Positions 3,826 through 39,113 of a stretch of DNA of 64,000 nt are shown here, one piece after another (the first letter of the stretch is position 1; every line of letters starts with the position of its first letter). Origin of the DNA: Antechinus flavipes. Its lineage: Eukaryota. The stretch is taken from positions 245,334,001 through 245,398,000 of the forward strand of contig NC_067403.1 in assembly GCF_016432865.1 (NCBI RefSeq), in the 5' to 3' direction. The notes under the pieces were generated by a model. It searched no databases and had not been told where the DNA came from. It worked only from the letters and a program-made list of their open reading frames with translations. The translations under genes and the position numbers were made by a program.

Positions 3826-4025
3826 GAATTCACAAAGTTACAAAGTTTACTTTGTGAAACTCCCATACTTGTGAACTCCAATGAGTAAAGGTGTGAACAC
3901 AAGCCTTGTATTAATTAATTCTACTTAGTACCTTGTTTCAGGTTCTGGCCCAAAACATCTTCTTGTAAGATCAGATCAATAATCTATCAACTCTAATGAG
4001 TTAGCAGTTTGTAAAGATTCCAACA
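3826..4025 (-). mobile_element. Partial LTR (U3 5' end), related to the LTRs of the NMRK2 provirus
   Basis: Reverse complement of about 3870-4025 aligns with 21970-22120, starting at the terminal TGTTGGAATC. Confidence 0.88.
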
Positions 4026-9836: not shown

Positions 9837-12800
9837 CTCAAAAGGACAAGAATCATTTAATCATTTGTATTAAAGAAGAGTGCTCAATGATTTCATCCAG
9901 ATTTTACATTTACAAAATATCTTGGTCTATTTTACAAAATTTGTTAGTGGATTTGGTATGTTGTAATATTTAAGGGAGAAGAATCATAGGTTCATTAAAA
10001 GGCATTGAACTTATAGGCACAAAAAACTCAGGTTGAAATCTTCTCTTTGGCACTTCACTGCTGTGTAATTTTGCTCAAGATCATTCATATTGAATTTCAG
10101 TTTCTTCAGTTTCCTCATCTGTAAAATCAGAAAATCGGTGGTACCTATATTATACTGCTGGTACATTAATGTTCACAAAGTTTTGAAAGCAATAAAGTAG
10201 CTTATGGATACACTTTATTATGTACCTGCATTATTTTCCTTATCATTATTGAAAAAGCAAGGAGTTGAATAATATTTCATCCTATCTAAGAAAGGTAAGT
10301 TTGAGCTCTTCGGCTGTCTAATTTTTAGTTTCTTTGATTTGAACAGAATTATTATCTATCTCACCTTTGTGAAAATTTTGAATTTTATGAACCTAATGAG
10401 CAATAGAGATTGAGGAAACAGATTATCCAGGGAATAAAAGATTCTGTTTATAGAATATACCCTGACCTTTCTGACAGGCTGGATGTGTATGGGGATTGAT
10501 ATAAACTTCACCCGTAATCACTTAATTAGAAAGAAATTTATCTTGTTTAATATGGCTTCATTTTTCTTATTTTTCCTTTTTCTTTTTTAAATAAAAATTT
10601 TTATCTACTTAATTTTCCTTAAAAAAAAAAAGAAAGAAAATCATTATAACTAATGAAATATTCCATACTTTGAACTTCCTTCAACACACATTTGTCAGAA
10701 AAGAAAAAGCAGGTTTTATCTCAATTCTCAGGGACCAAAGCTTTCAGTATACTTAATCAGAAGCCAGTGTTTGTTACTTTCCCCCAACTCCCATTACAAT
10801 ATGATAGAAGTAGTGGATATACTAGTCATTGTTTCTCCTTTCGTTGCTGTATCTCACTTCATTAAAAAGTCTTTATAAAGCTTTTGAGTTTATCATACTT
10901 TGATTTCCTTACAAGAAAATATTTAGTCAAAATCCTGAACCAAAAATATTTTATTCCCTGATAATTTTCCAGTTTCTTTCAGTGTTTTCTATTTTTTCCA
11001 GCTATAGTCAATCTGAATATTTTTTGAATATATAAATCTTTTCCCTTTCCTTTAACTGTTCTCCTTTCAATATATTCCATAGTAATTAGATCAATGAGGC
11101 AAAGTGTATAAAAAGTTTAGTTTTAGCTTCCATAATTTCAAATTGTTTTCTAAAATATTTAGAATAACTAAATGCTTCACTAAGAAAGTGTCATTGTATT
11201 TGTTGTCTTAATGAAGCACTATAATTGCGTATATTTAAAGCTTTTTCAATTTTGAAAATTTACAAGTATTAGGGGAATATGAAATATTACTCATTTTCCT
11301 TTTTAATAATACTTGTTATTTCTTTCAATGATTATTGATTATGCATAATTTTACTTTTGATATTATTTACATTAACTATTAGATATGTATGTATATTTAT
11401 ATATATTAGACATTTAATTCTGCCAGCCTTATGTTTATATCTGTGTTTAAAATTGTACTTTTATCAGAAATAAAGTACAAAGTACATATTTTTACTAAAT
11501 AGCCGTTCAATTTAAAAATACAGTACTAAATTTCTTTTTGTAACTAAAATGTAAAATTAAGATTATTCATTCCATGTTTTATCATTTTCTATATCATTAT
11601 TTAGAAAGGCATATTAAACATGGCAGGGGTAGGAATGATAATTTGGGGTCAAGAGAATCCAAATTCAAATCTTGTTCATATTCTTACCAAGTATGTGAAT
11701 GTTGGCAAGTTGATCAACCTCTTTGATTTTTGTATAAAATAAATGTAAGTTAATTGTATTATTTAATATCATTTAGATTTTACCAGTCACTTAAAAATAT
11801 CCTTTTATACTTAAGTTAAAATGATAAAATCTTCATAACTAGTCAATTTCTCACAACATAAAACTTTATATTTCGTCTTAGCTCATTGGTATGGTATAGA
11901 AAATATGATGATATGCACAAATGGAGGAATGACATTGGTATATTTGTTGGTCTAGTCAAACAGATCTAAAGGTAAAAGATACCTCAGAAATCAACTGTCA
12001 CATTACAAATGAGGAAAATGAGGTGAAGAGATGATAAATTACTTTATAATCCCAACATAGATAATAAGATTGGTGTTCAGAATTAAATCTATTTTCTGAA
12101 TCTACAACACATATTTCTTTTGTTGTAATATGTTTCCACACTGAACAATCCAAGATAGTTAGATAGATAGTATATTGGATTCAGGAGCTTTTGCTTAGCT
12201 TTTCAGTGAACTATGTCAGTCCTCTTGGTACCTAATTTTTTTTATAAATGAATCTATAATCCTTCTAATACTATCTTATTATTACCGCCTCTTACATGGA
12301 ATGCTTATGCATGGGATATATTTTAATTCATGATCATGTTTAAACATGAAACATTATATTTTCCCAAGTTCTCTATGTTATTTTTCTAGGAACAAGATTT
12401 CAAGTGGATGTTACAGTGGAAATGAGCCGATCAATACTGCCTTATTAAGTATGAAAGGAAAATAGAGCTTGGCAAATTAAAAGATACTAAAATGGACCAA
12501 CTACTTGTCACTATTGAATGAATCTCTAAATCTGAAATTTTAAGCATCAGTTGATTAGGCAGGTTTTATAGGTTACACATATTGCTAAGGACATATGATA
12601 GAGAGAATTTATTCCACTTAATTATTTTATTAAGCAGTTACTATATGAAGGACATGCTCAAGAGAGAAAGAAGATTATAAGAAATGATTTTTGTACTTTG
12701 GATGCTTAGAACACAGTTGGAAGTACAAAATGTGCATGTAGATAAGAACACATAGGTTAAGCAGAGGCCATTTGCTAATTGATCAATGTCTGGCATAGAT

Positions 12801-21300: not shown

Positions 21301-21969
21301 CAAGAAGCTTCTTGCCTTTACTCTAGGAACTGGCCTCTACCTCTGGAAATAATCTATATATAGCATCTTTAGCTCTCTCTTTTTCTCTTTTTTTCTTAGT
21401 TTCTAAGACACCATTGAATATAATGACAAAACAGAAGCAATAGCAATTAAACAAGTCAGGTTTTATTCCATAAGGAATTAAAATTAGGAATAGACCAGTG
21501 TTAAAGTGCATGAAATTAATTGTCTATACTCAACCATCCAAAGCAAAAAAAAAAAAAGAAAAAAAAAAAAGAAAAGGGAAAAGAATTTGAAGTTCTATGG
21601 TAAGGAGCAAAATCAGGAATCACAATGCCTCAGCCATTTGATGAAATGACCTCAATAATTAAACATGACTTCATGAAAATAAATGTAAGTCTTAAACAAT
21701 TAAATAAACCAAATTGATAAAATGTTATGTATGTAATAGTAAATTTAGACAAAGTAAAATTAGAAAAGGGTGAACATGACAGGATATATTCATGATGGTA
21801 AATAGACAAAATCAAAAAATACTTGAATTAATTGCCAATGGAATACCATATAGATGACCTGGACACAGAGAGATAAAACAGATATGTTTAGAGAGTTCAG
21901 ATCCTGGTAGAGAGCCATCATATATTAGTGTCAAAAAATTTCAATTTTCCATTTGCATATTTTGATATT

Positions 21970-22465
21970 TGTTGGAATCCTTACTAACTGCTAACTAATT
22001 AGAGTTGATCTAATCTTACAAGAAGATTTTGGCCAGAATCTGAAACAAGGTACTAAGTAGAACTAATTAATACAAGGTTTGTGTTCACACCTTTACTCAT
22101 TGGAGTTCAATGAGTTCACACCTCCCTTGAAGCTCATTGGGCCACAGAGCACTATGGGAGAAAACCCATAATCCCATTCTCTCAGAAGAGTCAAAAAGGC
22201 CAGCGATGAGGGCTCTATGGCAGAATACATTTTTTCCTCTTGGCTGGCTGGTCGCAGAAGAGAGCTCAGCTGGACTCGAGAGGAGCGACTCTGGTGGCAG
22301 ACGAAGGGTTGGACATTCCATCTCTGTGTTGGTTGGAGGCTGAAGAACACAGAGGCAGAGGCTGAAGGACAGAACCTTTGGATTTGGAGACATCCGAAGG
22401 GCTCTAAGCCTCTAAACCGGCTGTGCTTTGAGAAGAACAAGAACTCCAGCATTTGAACTCTAACA
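21970..22465 (+). repeat. 5' LTR (496 bp)
   Basis: Runs TGTTGGAATCC...CTCTAACA; differs from the 3' LTR by 6 substitutions and one 3-bp indel (manual alignment). Confidence 0.97.
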
Positions 22466-22467
22466 TT

Positions 22468-22485
22468 TGGCGCCCAACGTGGGGC
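22468..22485 (+). promoter_or_regulatory. Primer-binding site complementary to the 3' end of tRNA-Lys(1,2)
   Basis: TGGCGCCCAACGTGGGGC lies 2 nt after the 5' LTR; this is the known Lys1,2 PBS of MPMV-type betaretroviruses. Confidence 0.93.
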
Positions 22486-22652
22486 TAACAGACCTCCCCC
22501 CCCCCCAGTGGATTTCAGTGGAAAAGCTACGATCCTGATTCCAGTGGAAAAGACCCTTCAACCCAGAAATTAGGGTCGCCTCCCACTCCCTTCTCCTGGT
22601 GCCGTCTCAGCCCGTCTCCACCACCACTCCCCACCCACAGAGGGAACAGAAG

Positions 22653-23255
22653 ATGAAGTACATCATTGGCATTGGAGGCATGACCAACGGAGGAAAAACT
22701 ATACTGACCAATAGACTCATCAAAACCTTACCAAACTGCTGTGTGATCCACCAGGATGACTTTTACAAGCCACAAGATCAAATAGAAGTCGGGGAAGATG
22801 GCTTTAAGCAATGGGACGTGCTGGAATCTTTGGACATGGAGGCCATGTTGAACACAGTCCTGGCATGGCTAAACAACCCCATGAAGTTTGCCCGCACCCA
22901 TGGGATCAACATCCAACAGAACTCCCAGGAATCCAACTCCGATGATACCCACATCCTCATCCTGGAAGGCTTCTTGCTCTATAGTTACAAGCCCTTGCTG
23001 GATTTGTACAGTCGCCGTTACTTTTTGGCTGTTCCATATGAGGAATGCAAGAGAAGAAGAAGTACCCGCAACTATAAAGTTCCTGACCCTCCGGGTCTCT
23101 TTGATGGCCATATTTGGCCCATGTACCAGAAATACAGGCAGGAGATGGACAACAATGGTGTGGATGTAGTGCATATTGATGGACTGAAATCCAGAGATGA
23201 GCTTTACCGTCAAGTCCTGGAAGACATCCAGAATACACTCTTAAATCGCTCCTAG
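22653..23255 (+). CDS. NMRK2: Intronless nicotinamide riboside kinase 2 (NRK2/MIBP) retrocopy inside the provirus, 200 aa
   Basis: [16 protein letters not shown]...[35 protein letters not shown]...[11 protein letters not shown]...[17 protein letters not shown]...LLNRS matches mammalian NMRK2 over its length. P-loop, D35 and E105 (human E100) are present. True start is ATG 22653 with A at -3; the GTG extension is 5' UTR. Confidence 0.96.
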
Positions 23256-23397
23256 CTTCTGGGAAGAGAGTGAGAAAGGGAGTGGGACCTGCCCGTCACG
23301 GATTTAGCAGATCTCCATCATGCCAAAGGAACAATACACTGAACCAAGTCCATAGACTCTACAGGGCCCAGAGACAGGCGCCCTCAGCTCCTGGGGA

Positions 23398-23844
23398 GGT
23401 CAAGCAATAGTAGAAAGAAGAAACAGGGACATTAAGACACTCCTCCAAAAACAAAAGAAAGGGGGAGCCACGGGTAACCCTAGAGAACTTCTAAATTTAG
23501 TTCTCTATACCATTAATTTTTTAATCTTTGATAAAGATGCACTGGCTCCAGCAAACAGGTTTTATAACCCACCAGAAGAGCAGTGTCCAGTGCGAGCAGC
23601 TCCACTATCTTTAGATAATTGCCAGGTAATGTGGAGAGACCCAGAAAGTGGTGAATGGAAGGGACCAGATAGGCTAACTGCTTGGGGGAGAGGATTTGCT
23701 TGCATCTCTACATGTGGAGAAGGAATCAGATGGGTGCCTATGAGCCGCATTCGCCTTGTCCATCGCAGAGAGATGGAACAGACCCTTGAAACAAAGGAGA
23801 AGACCCAAGAAATATCGATTGTGCTCACCATTGAAAGAGCATAG
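23398..23844 (+). pseudogene. pol: 3' half of retroviral integrase (pol remnant), open frame without its own start
   Basis: Translates as GQAIVERRNRDIKTLLQKQKKGG...VMWRDPESGEWKGPDRLTAWGRGFACIS. This includes the catalytic Glu helix of DD35E and the W(K)GP...WGRG.AC C-terminal domain typical of betaretroviral IN. Confidence 0.9.
23445..23467 (+). promoter_or_regulatory. Central polypurine tract within the integrase remnant
   Basis: CCAAAAACAAAAGAAAGGGGGAG is a 23-nt exact copy of the 3' PPT region at 24397-24419. Confidence 0.7.
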
Positions 23845-24398
23845 CTGACAAGGAGACTGTTAAAAAGACTTTTAAAATCTTCAGGAATCATTGGATTTCC
23901 TAACACAAGATGAAACTGTTTTAGTTCTTGAAAAACCAGCGAGAATCATTGGATTCCTTAAGATGAAAAATTGTTGATGAGACTTTTGCAGTACTTCAGG
24001 GCTTACAGGAACCATTGGAATCCTGGCACATGAACTAATGGACAATGGATTCCTTATGGACTATTTCTAGGACTTATGGACATGTGCAAATTTTCAGGTT
24101 GATTCATGTTGTTACATTACTACTAACCTGTGTTATATTGCTATGTGCTTTTGTAAATTATGTATAATGCCTCCCATATTGATGGATTTATGTATACCAT
24201 GTATATCTGTTACAAAGTTCTGGCCCATATTGATGGATTTATGTGTACCCCTTCAGAAACCCACTAATCTGATTAGATTTCCTATTTCCTTTGGTGTTTT
24301 CATCTCCCTTCCTGAGGTGTCAGGAAAGGCGTGATCACCTTTTTTGGGGGTTCGCACCTCCTTGAGAAATCAGGGAGGTCATGACCATCCTATGTTCC

Positions 24399-24420
24399 AA
24401 AAACAAAAGAAAGGGGGAGA
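24399..24420 (+). promoter_or_regulatory. 3' polypurine tract
   Basis: AAAAACAAAAGAAAGGGGGAGA directly abuts the TG of the 3' LTR. Confidence 0.93.
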
Positions 24421-24919
24421 TGTTGGAATCCTTACTAACTGCTAACTAATTAGAGTTGATCTAATCTTACAAGAAGATTTTGGCCAGAATCTGAAACAAG
24501 GTACTAAGTAGAACTAATTAATACAAGGTTTGTGTTCACACATTTACTCATTGGAGTTCAATGAGTTCACACCTCCCTTGAAGCTCATTGGGCCAGAGAA
24601 CACTATGGGAGAAAACCCATAATCCCATTCTCTCAGAAGAGTCAGATAAAAGGCCAGCGATGAGGGCTCTATGGCAGAATACATTTTTTCCTCTTGGCTG
24701 GCTGGTCGCAGAAGAGAGCTCAGCTGGACTCGAGAGGAGCGACTCTGGTGGCAGACGAAGGGTTGGACATTCCATCTCTGTGTTGGTTGGAGGCTGAAGA
24801 ACGCAGAGGCAGAGGCTGAAGGACAGAACCTTTGGATTTGGAGACATCTGAAGGGCTCTAAGCCTCTAAACCGGCTATGCTTTGAGAAGAACAAGAACTC
24901 CAGCATTTGAACTCTAACA
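24421..24919 (+). repeat. 3' LTR (499 bp)
   Basis: Near-identical direct repeat of 21970-22465, followed by the TSD GATATT. Confidence 0.97.
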
Positions 24920-27346
24920 GATATTCCCTCCCATTTCTCTTTTTTCCTTCTCTCCTTCTTTCTTTATCTCTTCATCTCCCTCTTCCTTTCTCTGCCTTTT
25001 CCTCCTTACCTCCCTTCCTCTCCCTCTCTCTTCTTTTCTTTCTTCCATCTCTCTTCCTCCTTTCTCTCTTTTTTGTATTTCCCTATGTTTTCTGTATATT
25101 TCTCTGTATTTCTCTGTACCTCTGTCTTTGTCTCTTTCAGTTTTCTTGTCTTATTCTGTTTGTCTCTCTTGTGTTTTTCTTCTCCTGTTTATCTTTCTTT
25201 GCTTTTTGTGCACTTTTTTTTCTTTGTTTTTGCCTATCCTTTTATCCCTTTCTACACTGACAGGAAAGATAAAAATATAATAAAGTCAAATGCAGTACAA
25301 CCAAAATGTCAAAGAATTCTGGAAAATGATTTTAGATCCAAAAACAATTCATAGAAGAGCTCAAAATATTTTAAAAATAAAAGAAGTAGACTAAAATTGG
25401 GAAATACATGAAAGTGATACAAGATAATCAAGAAAAAATTCAGTGATAAAGGAGACACAAAAACCTAAGTGAAATTTTCTTTTCCCAAATTATTCTCAGA
25501 AAAATCCTGAAAAAATTTACATAAACAAATGCAATGTGAAATGAACAGAATAAGAATTTCATTATATACATATACAGAAATACTATATGTCAATCAAATA
25601 TGAATGACTTGGGTATTCTCTGTAAAACCATGATTTAATATGATTCTAAAGGACTTATGATAAGTGCTATTTATATCCCCCAAAAAAGTCACAAAAAATC
25701 CTGAGGGAGTCAGAATGTAGACAAACATATACTTTTTTTTTTTTCCTTTGTTTTTCTCTCTCTCTCTTTTTTTTTTAACAGTTTTTTTTCTTTCAGCACA
25801 TGACTAATGAGGTAATGTTTTCCTTGAGTACACAAGAATAATCTATGCCAGAATGCTTCTCTTCTCAATTGTGCAGGAGAGGGAAGGAATTTGGAATTAA
25901 GAATTAAAAAAAATTATTTTACATCTAATGTGATAATAAATATTAAAAATAAAAGAAAAAAATATACATATACATGTATCACAGAGTGGTGTTGTTAATT
26001 TGTATATCCTATTTCTTGGCAAACAAATGAGTGATTTGTCATTTCCTTTTCCAGTTCATCTTATAAATAAGGAAGTGGAGGCAAATAGGCTAAAATTGCA
26101 CTTGCACAGAATCATCCATCTAGGGTCTGAGACCACCCATGAATTCAGATATTCCTGACTGGCTGTTTTATATTATTTCTATTGTGCCACTTAGCTGTAC
26201 AACTACAGGGTATGTAAAGATATTGCCTATAATCAAATTCATCACATATCTAAGAGATCTTGTCAAGGTCTGTGGCAATGATTTATCACTTCATTTCAGT
26301 AATCTAAGTCACTCTGCACAACAAATTACACTTGGCCAAAGAACCAAAAACTTTAGAGCTGAAAGAATGAATTAATGAATTAAAGGATGGATTGATGTAT
26401 AGATTAGTGAGTGGATAAATGCATACATGTATGAATGAATAAATGAAAAAAATTAAGTTCATTATTTGCCAAACACTTTGTTAAGTGTTCAGGATACTAA
26501 TAGAAATGGGAAACCGAATAAGATTTTTTGGAACTTATTGTCTAACTGATGAAAAACATACATATAAGACAATTCAACTTCAGAAGAAATGAAAAATCCC
26601 AAAGTAAGTAAGAATGTCCAAAAGACCTTAATGTACCTTAGTTGATCAGATGACAAAGCTTAGAGAATTCAATAACAGGGCAAATAGCAAAGTCAGGGGA
26701 TTTTAGGACATAATGTTGGTCCAGTGAAGCCCTGGAGGCACTCCATCTTGATTGTTCATAATGTCTTATCTAGTCAATTAATATAAAGAGTCTCATCATG
26801 TTCTACCTTCTTGGTGGAGGATTTTGAACATTTACTCTGACCTCATATGAAGCAAATTGGGGACTAAAGAAGAGAAATAACTGGAATTCAAGCCATATAT
26901 TCTGACACATAATCATGTGGTCCTAGCACTTCTCTTAGTTTCTATCCATTATGAGTTCTCTAGTGTATCGTCCCAAGATTTAGAATAACTATATCTAATG
27001 TTTCATTAAGCAATGGAATGCTACAGAAAAGACCAATTGTTCCATGATATTAAGAGTTGCATTTTTCTAAATATTTGCTTTGAAAAAGTGAAGAGAATGA
27101 ATGATCATTTCTTTCAATTATGATAGTGAATGGTTACAAAACAGGCTACTACTTGATAATTGCCTATCTTCCCATAATAGTGTAGAGCAAGAAATGGAAA
27201 ATATCATTGTTTTCATTTTACAAATGAACAGTAAGGTAAACAGTACTGTATCCTTACATTAAAGAGATAAATATCATTCTATCTAAGGCCTCAGTATAAT
27301 CCCTTGACTCAAAACTCAGGATTGTTTTCCCTTATAAAATCCTGCC

Positions 27347-38060: not shown

Positions 38061-39113
38061 TAATCTATATATAGCATCTTTATCTCTCTCTCTCTTAATT
38101 TCTAAGACAACATTGAATATTATGATAAAGCAGAAGCAATAGCAATTAAACAAATCAGATTTTATTTCATAAGGAATTAAAATCAGAAATAGACCAGTGT
38201 TAAAGTATATGAAATTAATTGTCTATATTCAACCATCCAAAGCAAAAAAAAAAAAAAAAAAAAAAGGAAAAGAATTTGAAGTTTTAACGTAAAGAGCAAA
38301 ATCAGGAATCCCAATGTCTCAGTCATTTGATGAAATGACCTCAATAACTGAATGTGACTTTATGAAAATAAATATGTCTTAAGCAATTAAATAACTGAAT
38401 TGATAAAATCTTATGTATGTAATAGTAAATTTAGAAAAAGTAAAATTAGAAAAGGGTGAACATGACAGGATATATTCATGATGGTAAATTGACAAAAAAA
38501 AAATGCTGGAATTAGTTGCCAATGGAATACAATATAGATGACCTGGACAGAAAGAGAAAAAAAAAAAAAACTGATATATTTAGAGAGTTCAGCTCCTGGT
38601 AGAGAGCCATCATATATTAGTGTTGAAGAATTTCAATTTTCATTTGCATATGTTGACATTCCCTCCCACTTCTCTTTTTCCTTCCCTCCCTCTCCCTTTC
38701 TCTCTTCCTTTCCCTGTCTTTTCCTTCTTCCCTCCCTAATGTTCCCTAATGTCCCTTCCCTTCCCTAATGTTTCATTAAGTAGTGGGATGCTATAGAAGA
38801 GACAAATTGGTCCATGATAAGGGTTGCATTTTTCTAAATATTTGCTTTGAAAAAGTGAAGAGAATGAATGATTAATTCTTCCAATTATGATAGTGAATAG
38901 TTACAAAACAGGCTACTACTTGATAATTTCTTATCTTCCCATAATAGTGTAGAGCAAGAAATGGAAAATATCATTGCTTTCATTTTACAAATGAACAGTA
39001 AGGAAAACAGTACTGTATCCTTACAATAAAGAGACAAGTCTCATTCTATCTAAGGCCTCAATATAATCCCTTGACTCAAAACTCAGGACTGTTTTCCCTT
39101 ATAAAATCCTGCC

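Follow-up and report, generated by a model that had tools for sequence, protein, structure and literature searches.

A family of endogenous retroviruses carrying a spliced host NMRK2 gene in the marsupial Antechinus flavipes

Host-gene capture is textbook knowledge for tumour retroviruses, and germ-line fossils of such captures are rarely seen. The ETn/MusD system and the deleted IAP elements of mouse, for their part, exemplify non-autonomous endogenous retroviruses (ERVs) that are moved in trans by an autonomous relative. The only germ-line captures of host genes by ERVs that we found in a literature search are those of crocodilians, in which ERV lineages have taken up the mRNAs of KIT-ligand and nectin3 (Chong et al. 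2014, PMC4299795). Chimeras formed by long terminal repeat (LTR)-mediated retroposition have been described by Tan et al. (2016, PMC5131818). A "significant expansion" of NMRK2, the gene for nicotinamide riboside kinase 2, was reported in the marsupial Antechinus stuartii, which has 11 full-length copies where human, mouse, opossum and Tasmanian devil have one; the expansion was discussed in terms of NAD+ and ageing, and no mechanism was given (Brandies et al. 2020, PMC9631953). Here we analyse a stretch of 64,000 nucleotides (nt) from the related species Antechinus flavipes (contig NC_067403.1, positions 245,334,001 to 245,398,000 of the forward strand; hereafter the window, in whose own numbering all positions are given), which harbours a 2950-bp provirus at 21970–24919 with NMRK2 inside it. 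By exact sequence match, the window lies on chromosome record CM028222.1 of the A. flavipes assembly GCA_016432865.2. The provirus is very probably one copy of a young, non-autonomous ERV family of A. flavipes that carries a spliced copy of the host gene.

The product of the open reading frame (ORF) at 22653–23255 matches structures of human nicotinamide riboside kinase 1 (E = 2e-65) and is 98% identical to NMRK2 of the Tasmanian devil (E = 3e-132). The parental gene of A. flavipes, the protein of which (P0124) is annotated by NCBI as "nicotinamide riboside kinase 2", comprises seven coding exons spread over 11.9 kb. Window positions 22574–23398 align to this gene in seven pieces of 96–99% identity, and the intervening gaps correspond to GT-AG introns; the joined parental exons translate exactly to P0124, and the devil NMRK2 gene has the same structure. 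The element carries a fully spliced copy of the multi-exon gene, the seven parental exons being contiguous in it, as had been proposed in an earlier note on this DNA that described a complete, intronless coding sequence of 200 amino acids (aa). The same note had delimited the host-derived part as 22574–23396, of which the start stands and the end is to be moved to 23398. The host part stops 143 nt into the 3′ untranslated region (UTR), close to the previous estimate of about 140 nt and ~190 nt short of the parental ATTAAA signal. As likewise stated before, there is no poly(A) at its 3′ end, nor any A-run. Neither junction shows a target duplication flanking the NMRK2 insert.

The layout is that of a transducing retrovirus, as the earlier note had recognized: host cDNA replaces the viral genes, and the LTRs, the primer-binding site and the polypurine tract are retained. 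The two LTRs, with TG..CA ends, differ by six substitutions and one 3-bp indel. These repeats and their ends, the GATATT duplication and the unoccupied site GACATT all lie at, or within a few bases of, the positions previously assigned to them. The parts are the following:

21964–21969 (+): left target-site duplication GATATT, identical to the hexamer at 24920–24925
21970–22465 (+): 5′ LTR, 496 bp, TG..CA, delimited by alignment with the 3′ LTR
22468–22485 (+): primer-binding site complementary to tRNA-Lys1,2, 2 nt past the 5′ LTR; exact 18-mer in PMC8775094
22486–22573 (+): 88-nt leader, putatively viral, present in all nine copies and unmatched in the parental NMRK2 locus
22574–23398 (+): captured spliced NMRK2 cDNA, delimited by exon-by-exon alignment to the parental gene, each end ambiguous by 1–2 nt
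22574–22652 (+): NMRK2 5′UTR, 79 nt
22653–23255 (+): NMRK2 ORF, 603 nt, 200 aa plus stop, intact
23256–23398 (+): NMRK2 3′UTR, 143 nt
23398–23844 (+): 3′ end of pol, last 148 integrase codons, open to the stop (PF00552, E = 2.7e-13)
23444–23467 (+): internal copy of the 24-nt polypurine-tract string, within the integrase frame, exact repeat of 24396–24419
23845–24395 (+): non-coding tail with three GAATCATTGGATTC-like units (at 23885, 23943 and 24009), homologous to the repeat array that follows pol in the marsupial retrovirus MEBrv 3
24396–24420 (+): polypurine tract adjoining the 3′ LTR; the same tract precedes the 3′ LTR in other copies
24421–24919 (+): 3′ LTR, 499 bp, delimited by alignment with the 5′ LTR
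24920–24925 (+): right target-site duplication GATATT, identical to the hexamer at 21964–21969
38655–38660 (+): unoccupied site GACATT in a paralogous spacer of the olfactory-receptor tandem array, located by flank alignment

Gag, pro, reverse transcriptase and env were not found in the element, in agreement with the first description. The primer site, originally read as a lysine site, is given letter for letter as a tRNA-Lys1,2 primer site in PMC8775094, and its identity rests on that publication, no tRNA genes having been found in the window. The leader, put at about 90 nt, measures 88 nt and is unmatched across the parental NMRK2 locus, 2.9 kb upstream of the ATG included; its interpretation as an NMRK2 exon from within this region was accordingly rejected, and we infer that it is of viral origin. 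No ATG intervenes between the 5′ LTR and that of NMRK2 at 22653, which is indeed the first downstream of the LTR; four ATGs lie inside the LTR itself. What had been called the 3′ half of integrase is the end of that protein, although its 148 codons make up somewhat less than half. A scan of the element against Rfam produced nothing near the gathering score, and the RNA fold of the tail is unremarkable (z = -1.0).

Additional copies place this provirus within a family. In A. flavipes, twelve proteins of 200 aa carry the NCBI annotation NMRK2 or "NMRK2-like", namely, the parent and eleven others. Eight further loci were retrieved, all intronless and all with the two junctions identical to those of the window copy; six of these loci hold complete proviruses of 3.0–3.2 kb, each with its own 6-bp target duplication:

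L001: GATGCC
L005: TGGAGC
L006: TATACA
L009: GGAAAT
L010: ATTCAT
L012: ATGTAC

There are at least seven complete copies, on five chromosomes, and nine loci on six chromosomes when two damaged members are included, which bears out the suggestion of a multi-copy NMRK2-carrying family. Matching 6-bp flanks occur in 7/7 complete copies, so that chance is excluded, and all seven duplications are different. Pairwise identity of the interiors is 97.2–98.8%, and the LTRs of a pair differ by 0.8–1.2%. In a tree of the host-derived 825 nt, built with the parental gene as the earlier note had advised, the nine copies form one clade (467/500 bootstraps), whose sister is the A. flavipes parent; the devil gene falls outside both. 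Given this single clade, the common junctions and the private duplications, there was one capture in the Antechinus lineage, followed by repeated integration through retrotransposition. Measured against the intron divergence of 5.5% between the NMRK2 genes of A. flavipes and devil, the divergence within LTR pairs dates the insertions to about 0.15–0.22 of the time since the Antechinus-devil split, and the window copy to roughly 0.2.

The window also contains a paralogous version of the site that lacks the element. The left flank of the element aligns up to 38660 and the right flank from 38655, at ~87% identity and with nothing between them. Because the flanks meet uninterrupted in this other unit, the element is an insertion into one unit of the olfactory-receptor array that took place later than the duplication of the array. 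The whole window is such a tandem array, with units of 12–16 kb and five olfactory-receptor ORFs (PF13853; 731–1702, 13563–14486, 29477–30400, 41261–42184 and 62801–63724). The array units are ~13% diverged in the spacer, exceeding the divergence of the NMRK2 introns between A. flavipes and devil.

Several features of the individual copies deserve mention. In one damaged member (L011, 3198–4804), a deletion begins immediately downstream of the host part and reaches to the final ~53 nt of an LTR; the other (L002, 3433–5464) keeps the leader, NMRK2 and part of integrase, but its 5′ LTR is truncated and it contains a piece of LTR in inverted orientation. The LTRs of the seven complete copies measure between 496 and 629 bp and are mosaic: the start of U3 is common to all, a block of U3 occurs in some and not in others, and the segment on the R/U5 side exists in two unrelated versions, which suggests recombination with different LTR subfamilies during spread. 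On the minus strand of the window, at 4025–3810, a fragment matches the longer, L001-type LTR over its first 200 nt (~86% identity) and then diverges; it is missing from the paralogous array units, indicating that a related LTR family has also inserted in the window. At two intronless copies (the loci of L009 and of protein P0005), the NCBI "isoform X2" models P0015 and P0129, of 176 aa, are short of precisely the 24 residues that parental exon 5 encodes, which looks like the transfer of a parental exon-skipped isoform by the annotation pipeline.

The remnant of pol matches PF00552, the C-terminal domain of integrase, and consists of the C-terminal edge of the core and the C-terminal DNA-binding domain; the zinc domain and essentially the entire catalytic core are missing. 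It reads to a single stop in 5/7 complete copies, one of the others having an extra stop and one a frameshift, and the window copy shows one 16-nt length difference from the other copies. The closest database relative in a word-based search is P0283, a fragment with integrase zinc and core domains, at 92% amino-acid identity, the match beginning at P0283 residue 160/161, which is the end of the Pfam core model. A representative library searched with the integrase piece returned identities of at most 46%, to "Endogenous retrovirus group K ... Pol" models from birds and a bat. The polypurine 24-mer that precedes the 3′ LTR (24396–24419) recurs without mismatch inside the integrase frame (23444–23467), as it does within integrase in the published record of MEBrv 3, and a mere 46 nt separate the internal string from the capture junction upstream of it. 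A central polypurine tract occupies this place in lentiviruses and foamy viruses. A 6-bp target duplication is typical of class II ERVs, and the element displays both this and the Lys1,2 primer site, the features of a class II (betaretrovirus-like) element.

MEBrv 3 is a 7.3-kb, env-less, betaretrovirus-like class II ERV amplified in all dasyurids and reported to be still active in them, A. flavipes having intact copies with identical LTRs (Harding et al. 2024, PMC11334065). Text passages of its record in the supplement of that paper, compared by eye and with no tool alignment, contain a near-identical integrase stretch, including the purine-rich 24-mer, and, after pol, a GAATCATTGGATTC array of ~ten tandem units versus three in the tail of our element. 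This resemblance leads us to trace the element's 3′ part, integrase piece and tail alike, to the MEBrv 3 lineage. Because gag, pro and the rest of pol are missing, the element is a non-autonomous MEBrv 3 derivative and not a full member; the absence of gag, pro and reverse transcriptase also implies dependence on a helper, and MEBrv 3 is the likely supplier of the proteins. The GAATCATTGGATTC-like units of the tail (23885–24022) are spaced ~60 nt apart, and each is a short imperfect palindrome. In the same supplement, the A. flavipes record "Marsupial_endogenous_betaretrovirus_2" ends, at about nt 10700–11106, in an antisense MEBrv 3 integrase stretch and apparently takes in a portion of a MEBrv 3 copy that is nested in it or lies next to it.

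The family goes back to a single capture that joined the putatively viral leader to the NMRK2 5′UTR and the NMRK2 3′UTR to the last 148 integrase codons. What is needed in cis was retained, namely, both LTRs, the Lys1,2 primer site, the leader, the internal and terminal polypurine tracts and the tail downstream of pol. The proteins for packaging, reverse transcription and integration would have been provided in trans by MEBrv 3, and the spread would have occurred by intracellular retrotransposition in the germ line, as in mouse ETn/MusD. Since MEBrv 3 is described as env-less and intracellular, such spread is better called trans-mobilised retrotransposition than infection. RNA driven by the LTR would offer the NMRK2 AUG as the first AUG after the LTR.

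As to how the host sequence was acquired, the sequences joined at the 3′ junction are non-homologous and share two letters at most, which is exactly what a template switch during reverse transcription would produce. At the 5′ junction, the parental gene of A. flavipes and that of devil alike have, immediately upstream, a pyrimidine run ending in CAG that resembles a splice acceptor, and in the MEBrv 3 record a consensus splice donor lies a short way past the primer site. Read-through and splicing from a provirus upstream of NMRK2, followed by one template switch, fits this configuration, and both the acceptor-like run and the donor count against the competing route, in which two template switches took place on a co-packaged mature NMRK2 mRNA (LTR-mediated retroposition). 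In that scenario, reverse transcriptase would jump from the integrase region to the mRNA 3′UTR, run to the 5′ end and jump back to the leader, with no need for an upstream provirus. Consistent with it, the host part begins ~80 nt before the ATG, at a plausible cap site with an A-rich, TATA-like stretch ~35 nt upstream in the parent, and each junction has at most one or two shared letters, as in the chimeras of PMC5131818. We rate the two routes about equal, so that two switches are a serious possibility, if one slightly short of an even chance; the choice concerns the origin step only and leaves the remainder of the account as it stands. The alternative that the earlier note had set against its own reading, namely, an L1-made processed NMRK2 retrocopy within an already integrated provirus, subsequently copied by DNA duplication, fares far worse. 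The absence of introns speaks for it and nothing else does, whereas an L1 retrocopy with its own target duplication and poly(A) is ruled out by the junction sequences: there is no poly(A) and the insert ends ~190 nt before the parental poly(A) signal, no duplication surrounds it, and it replaces viral genes instead of interrupting them. Furthermore, the DNA flanking the seven copies is unrelated, and the 6-bp duplication at the LTR ends is private to each of them, which makes this origin extremely improbable. A chimeric assembly of ERV and NMRK2 reads is harder still to credit, given that nine separately assembled loci on six chromosomes share the junctions and have private differences of 1–3%, and that the independent assembly of the sister species A. 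stuartii has 11 NMRK2 copies (PMC9631953).

The question of whether the kinase itself has mattered is more finely balanced. The essential carboxylates of human Nrk1 are Asp36 and Glu98, and nine substrate-contact residues have been defined on the human enzyme (PMC1994991); the P-loop and both carboxylates are kept in all retrovirus-borne proteins, and intact copies could each yield a full nicotinamide riboside kinase 2. Given that pairwise ratios of non-synonymous to synonymous substitution (dN/dS) proved too noisy, they were replaced by counts of private and shared changes, with a mutation spectrum derived from the elements' own non-coding parts. Private changes among the nine copies comprise 13 synonymous and 11 non-synonymous ones, against an expected synonymous share of 0.28 (P = 0.007; omega about 0.33), and all changes together give an omega of about 0.5 (P = 0.035). 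The ORF shows 20 private changes where 34.6 would be expected at the non-coding rate of the element (P = 0.005). These small counts, which form part of a mixed body of evidence, suggest but do not prove mild purifying selection on the ORF.

A number of observations weigh against the account given here or against parts of it. The LTR of the window copy contains no canonical TATA or AATAAA by which its transcription start, poly(A) signal and R region could be placed. The assignment to MEBrv 3 as helper is based on the 3′ part of the element only; in the published MEBrv 3 representative, from quoll, the start of the LTR and the leader differ from those of our element. Short-string searches for this leader and this LTR start in the MEBrv supplement were negative (for the LTR start, about half of the block registers were covered), no full-length partner with this LTR and leader was retrieved, and neither gag nor pol occurs in the 160 kb of DNA retrieved. 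Furthermore, every copy was reached by way of an NCBI protein model with an intact ORF, so that broken copies go unseen and the sample is small and biased. Finally, 4/11 retrovirus-borne proteins are altered at one of the nine substrate-contact residues, three of them at one CpG codon, the window protein being among the four with one private replacement at a nucleotide-contact residue; and the variants common to two or more copies include 1 synonymous and 7 non-synonymous changes.

The last three of these points, along with the mere 1–3% divergence of the copies, favour the view that NMRK2 is a neutral passenger, the ORFs being intact only because the family is young and intact copies are the ones annotated, with no selection on the protein. 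The synonymous excess among private changes argues in the opposite direction, as does the finding that the ORF has fewer changes than the remainder of the elements would predict, and the intact-ORF filter drops stops and frameshifts but barely affects missense changes. We consider the passenger view a strong contender, falling somewhat below even likelihood. A role for the cargo is rather unlikely in our judgement: NMRK2 transcribed from the LTRs of as many as eleven or so additional intact genes might alter NAD+ salvage in Antechinus tissues, with some copies co-opted by the host, or the kinase might have aided the spread of the element in germ cells, and the family may still be active and polymorphic in the wild. 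If true, help from the kinase in spreading would explain why a metabolic gene reached high copy number on a retroelement under purifying selection; a benefit to the virus through NAD+ supply, raised in the earlier note, is speculation.

Whichever way this is decided, the NMRK2 elements render a capture readable at single-base resolution in a young mammalian family: the parental gene is available, as are the two junctions, the seven sites of integration, one unoccupied site and a named lineage of likely helpers that is reportedly still active. They also offer a mechanism for the published NMRK2 expansion, for which a possible bearing on the ageing of a semelparous marsupial has been considered. 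Should the copies be retroelement cargo, selfish amplification and not adaptation may account for how many there are, and the question of adaptive gene or passenger becomes directly testable. The earlier note knew of no description of such an element. The expansion had in fact been published, and the retroviral origin is not part of that report, the text of PMC9631953 making no mention of retro-, intronless or LTR in the context of NMRK2; the text of PMC11334065 does not mention NMRK2. No paper linking the NMRK2 expansion to a retrovirus was found in a literature search that lacked most subscription journals. Thus, the kind of element is known and so is the expansion, and the link between the expansion and a retrovirus appears to be new.

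Among known systems, the acutely transforming transducing retroviruses share with the NMRK2 element the succession of LTR, primer site, leader, intron-free host cDNA, viral-gene remnant, polypurine tract and LTR, as well as the lack of poly(A), the loss of viral genes and the need for a helper. In contrast to them, the NMRK2 element is fixed in the germ line and multi-copy, its cargo is a metabolic kinase and not a growth-control gene and keeps its own 5′UTR and ATG with no gag fusion, and its presumed helper has no env, so that spread would be intracellular. The crocodilian ERVs (PMC4299795) resemble it in having captured a host mRNA as an ORF, in being present as several insertions and in showing signs of purifying selection. 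They have, however, kept all or most of their viral genes, KIT-ligand having been added without loss and nectin3 having replaced env, whereas the NMRK2 element retains the end of integrase only, resides in a marsupial and belongs to the class II, betaretrovirus-like ERVs. In the chimeras of PMC5131818, too, portions of an LTR element enclose an mRNA copy, the fusion points show little similarity or none, and the LTR drives co-transcription, but these chimeras are described as single-locus retrocopies, whereas the NMRK2 chimera kept all of its cis elements and became a propagating family. This propagation has its counterpart in ETn/MusD of mouse, in which a short element with only the terminal cis parts in common with an env-less autonomous partner has been amplified in the germ line; the interior of ETn is non-coding, whereas that of the NMRK2 element is an intact host gene.

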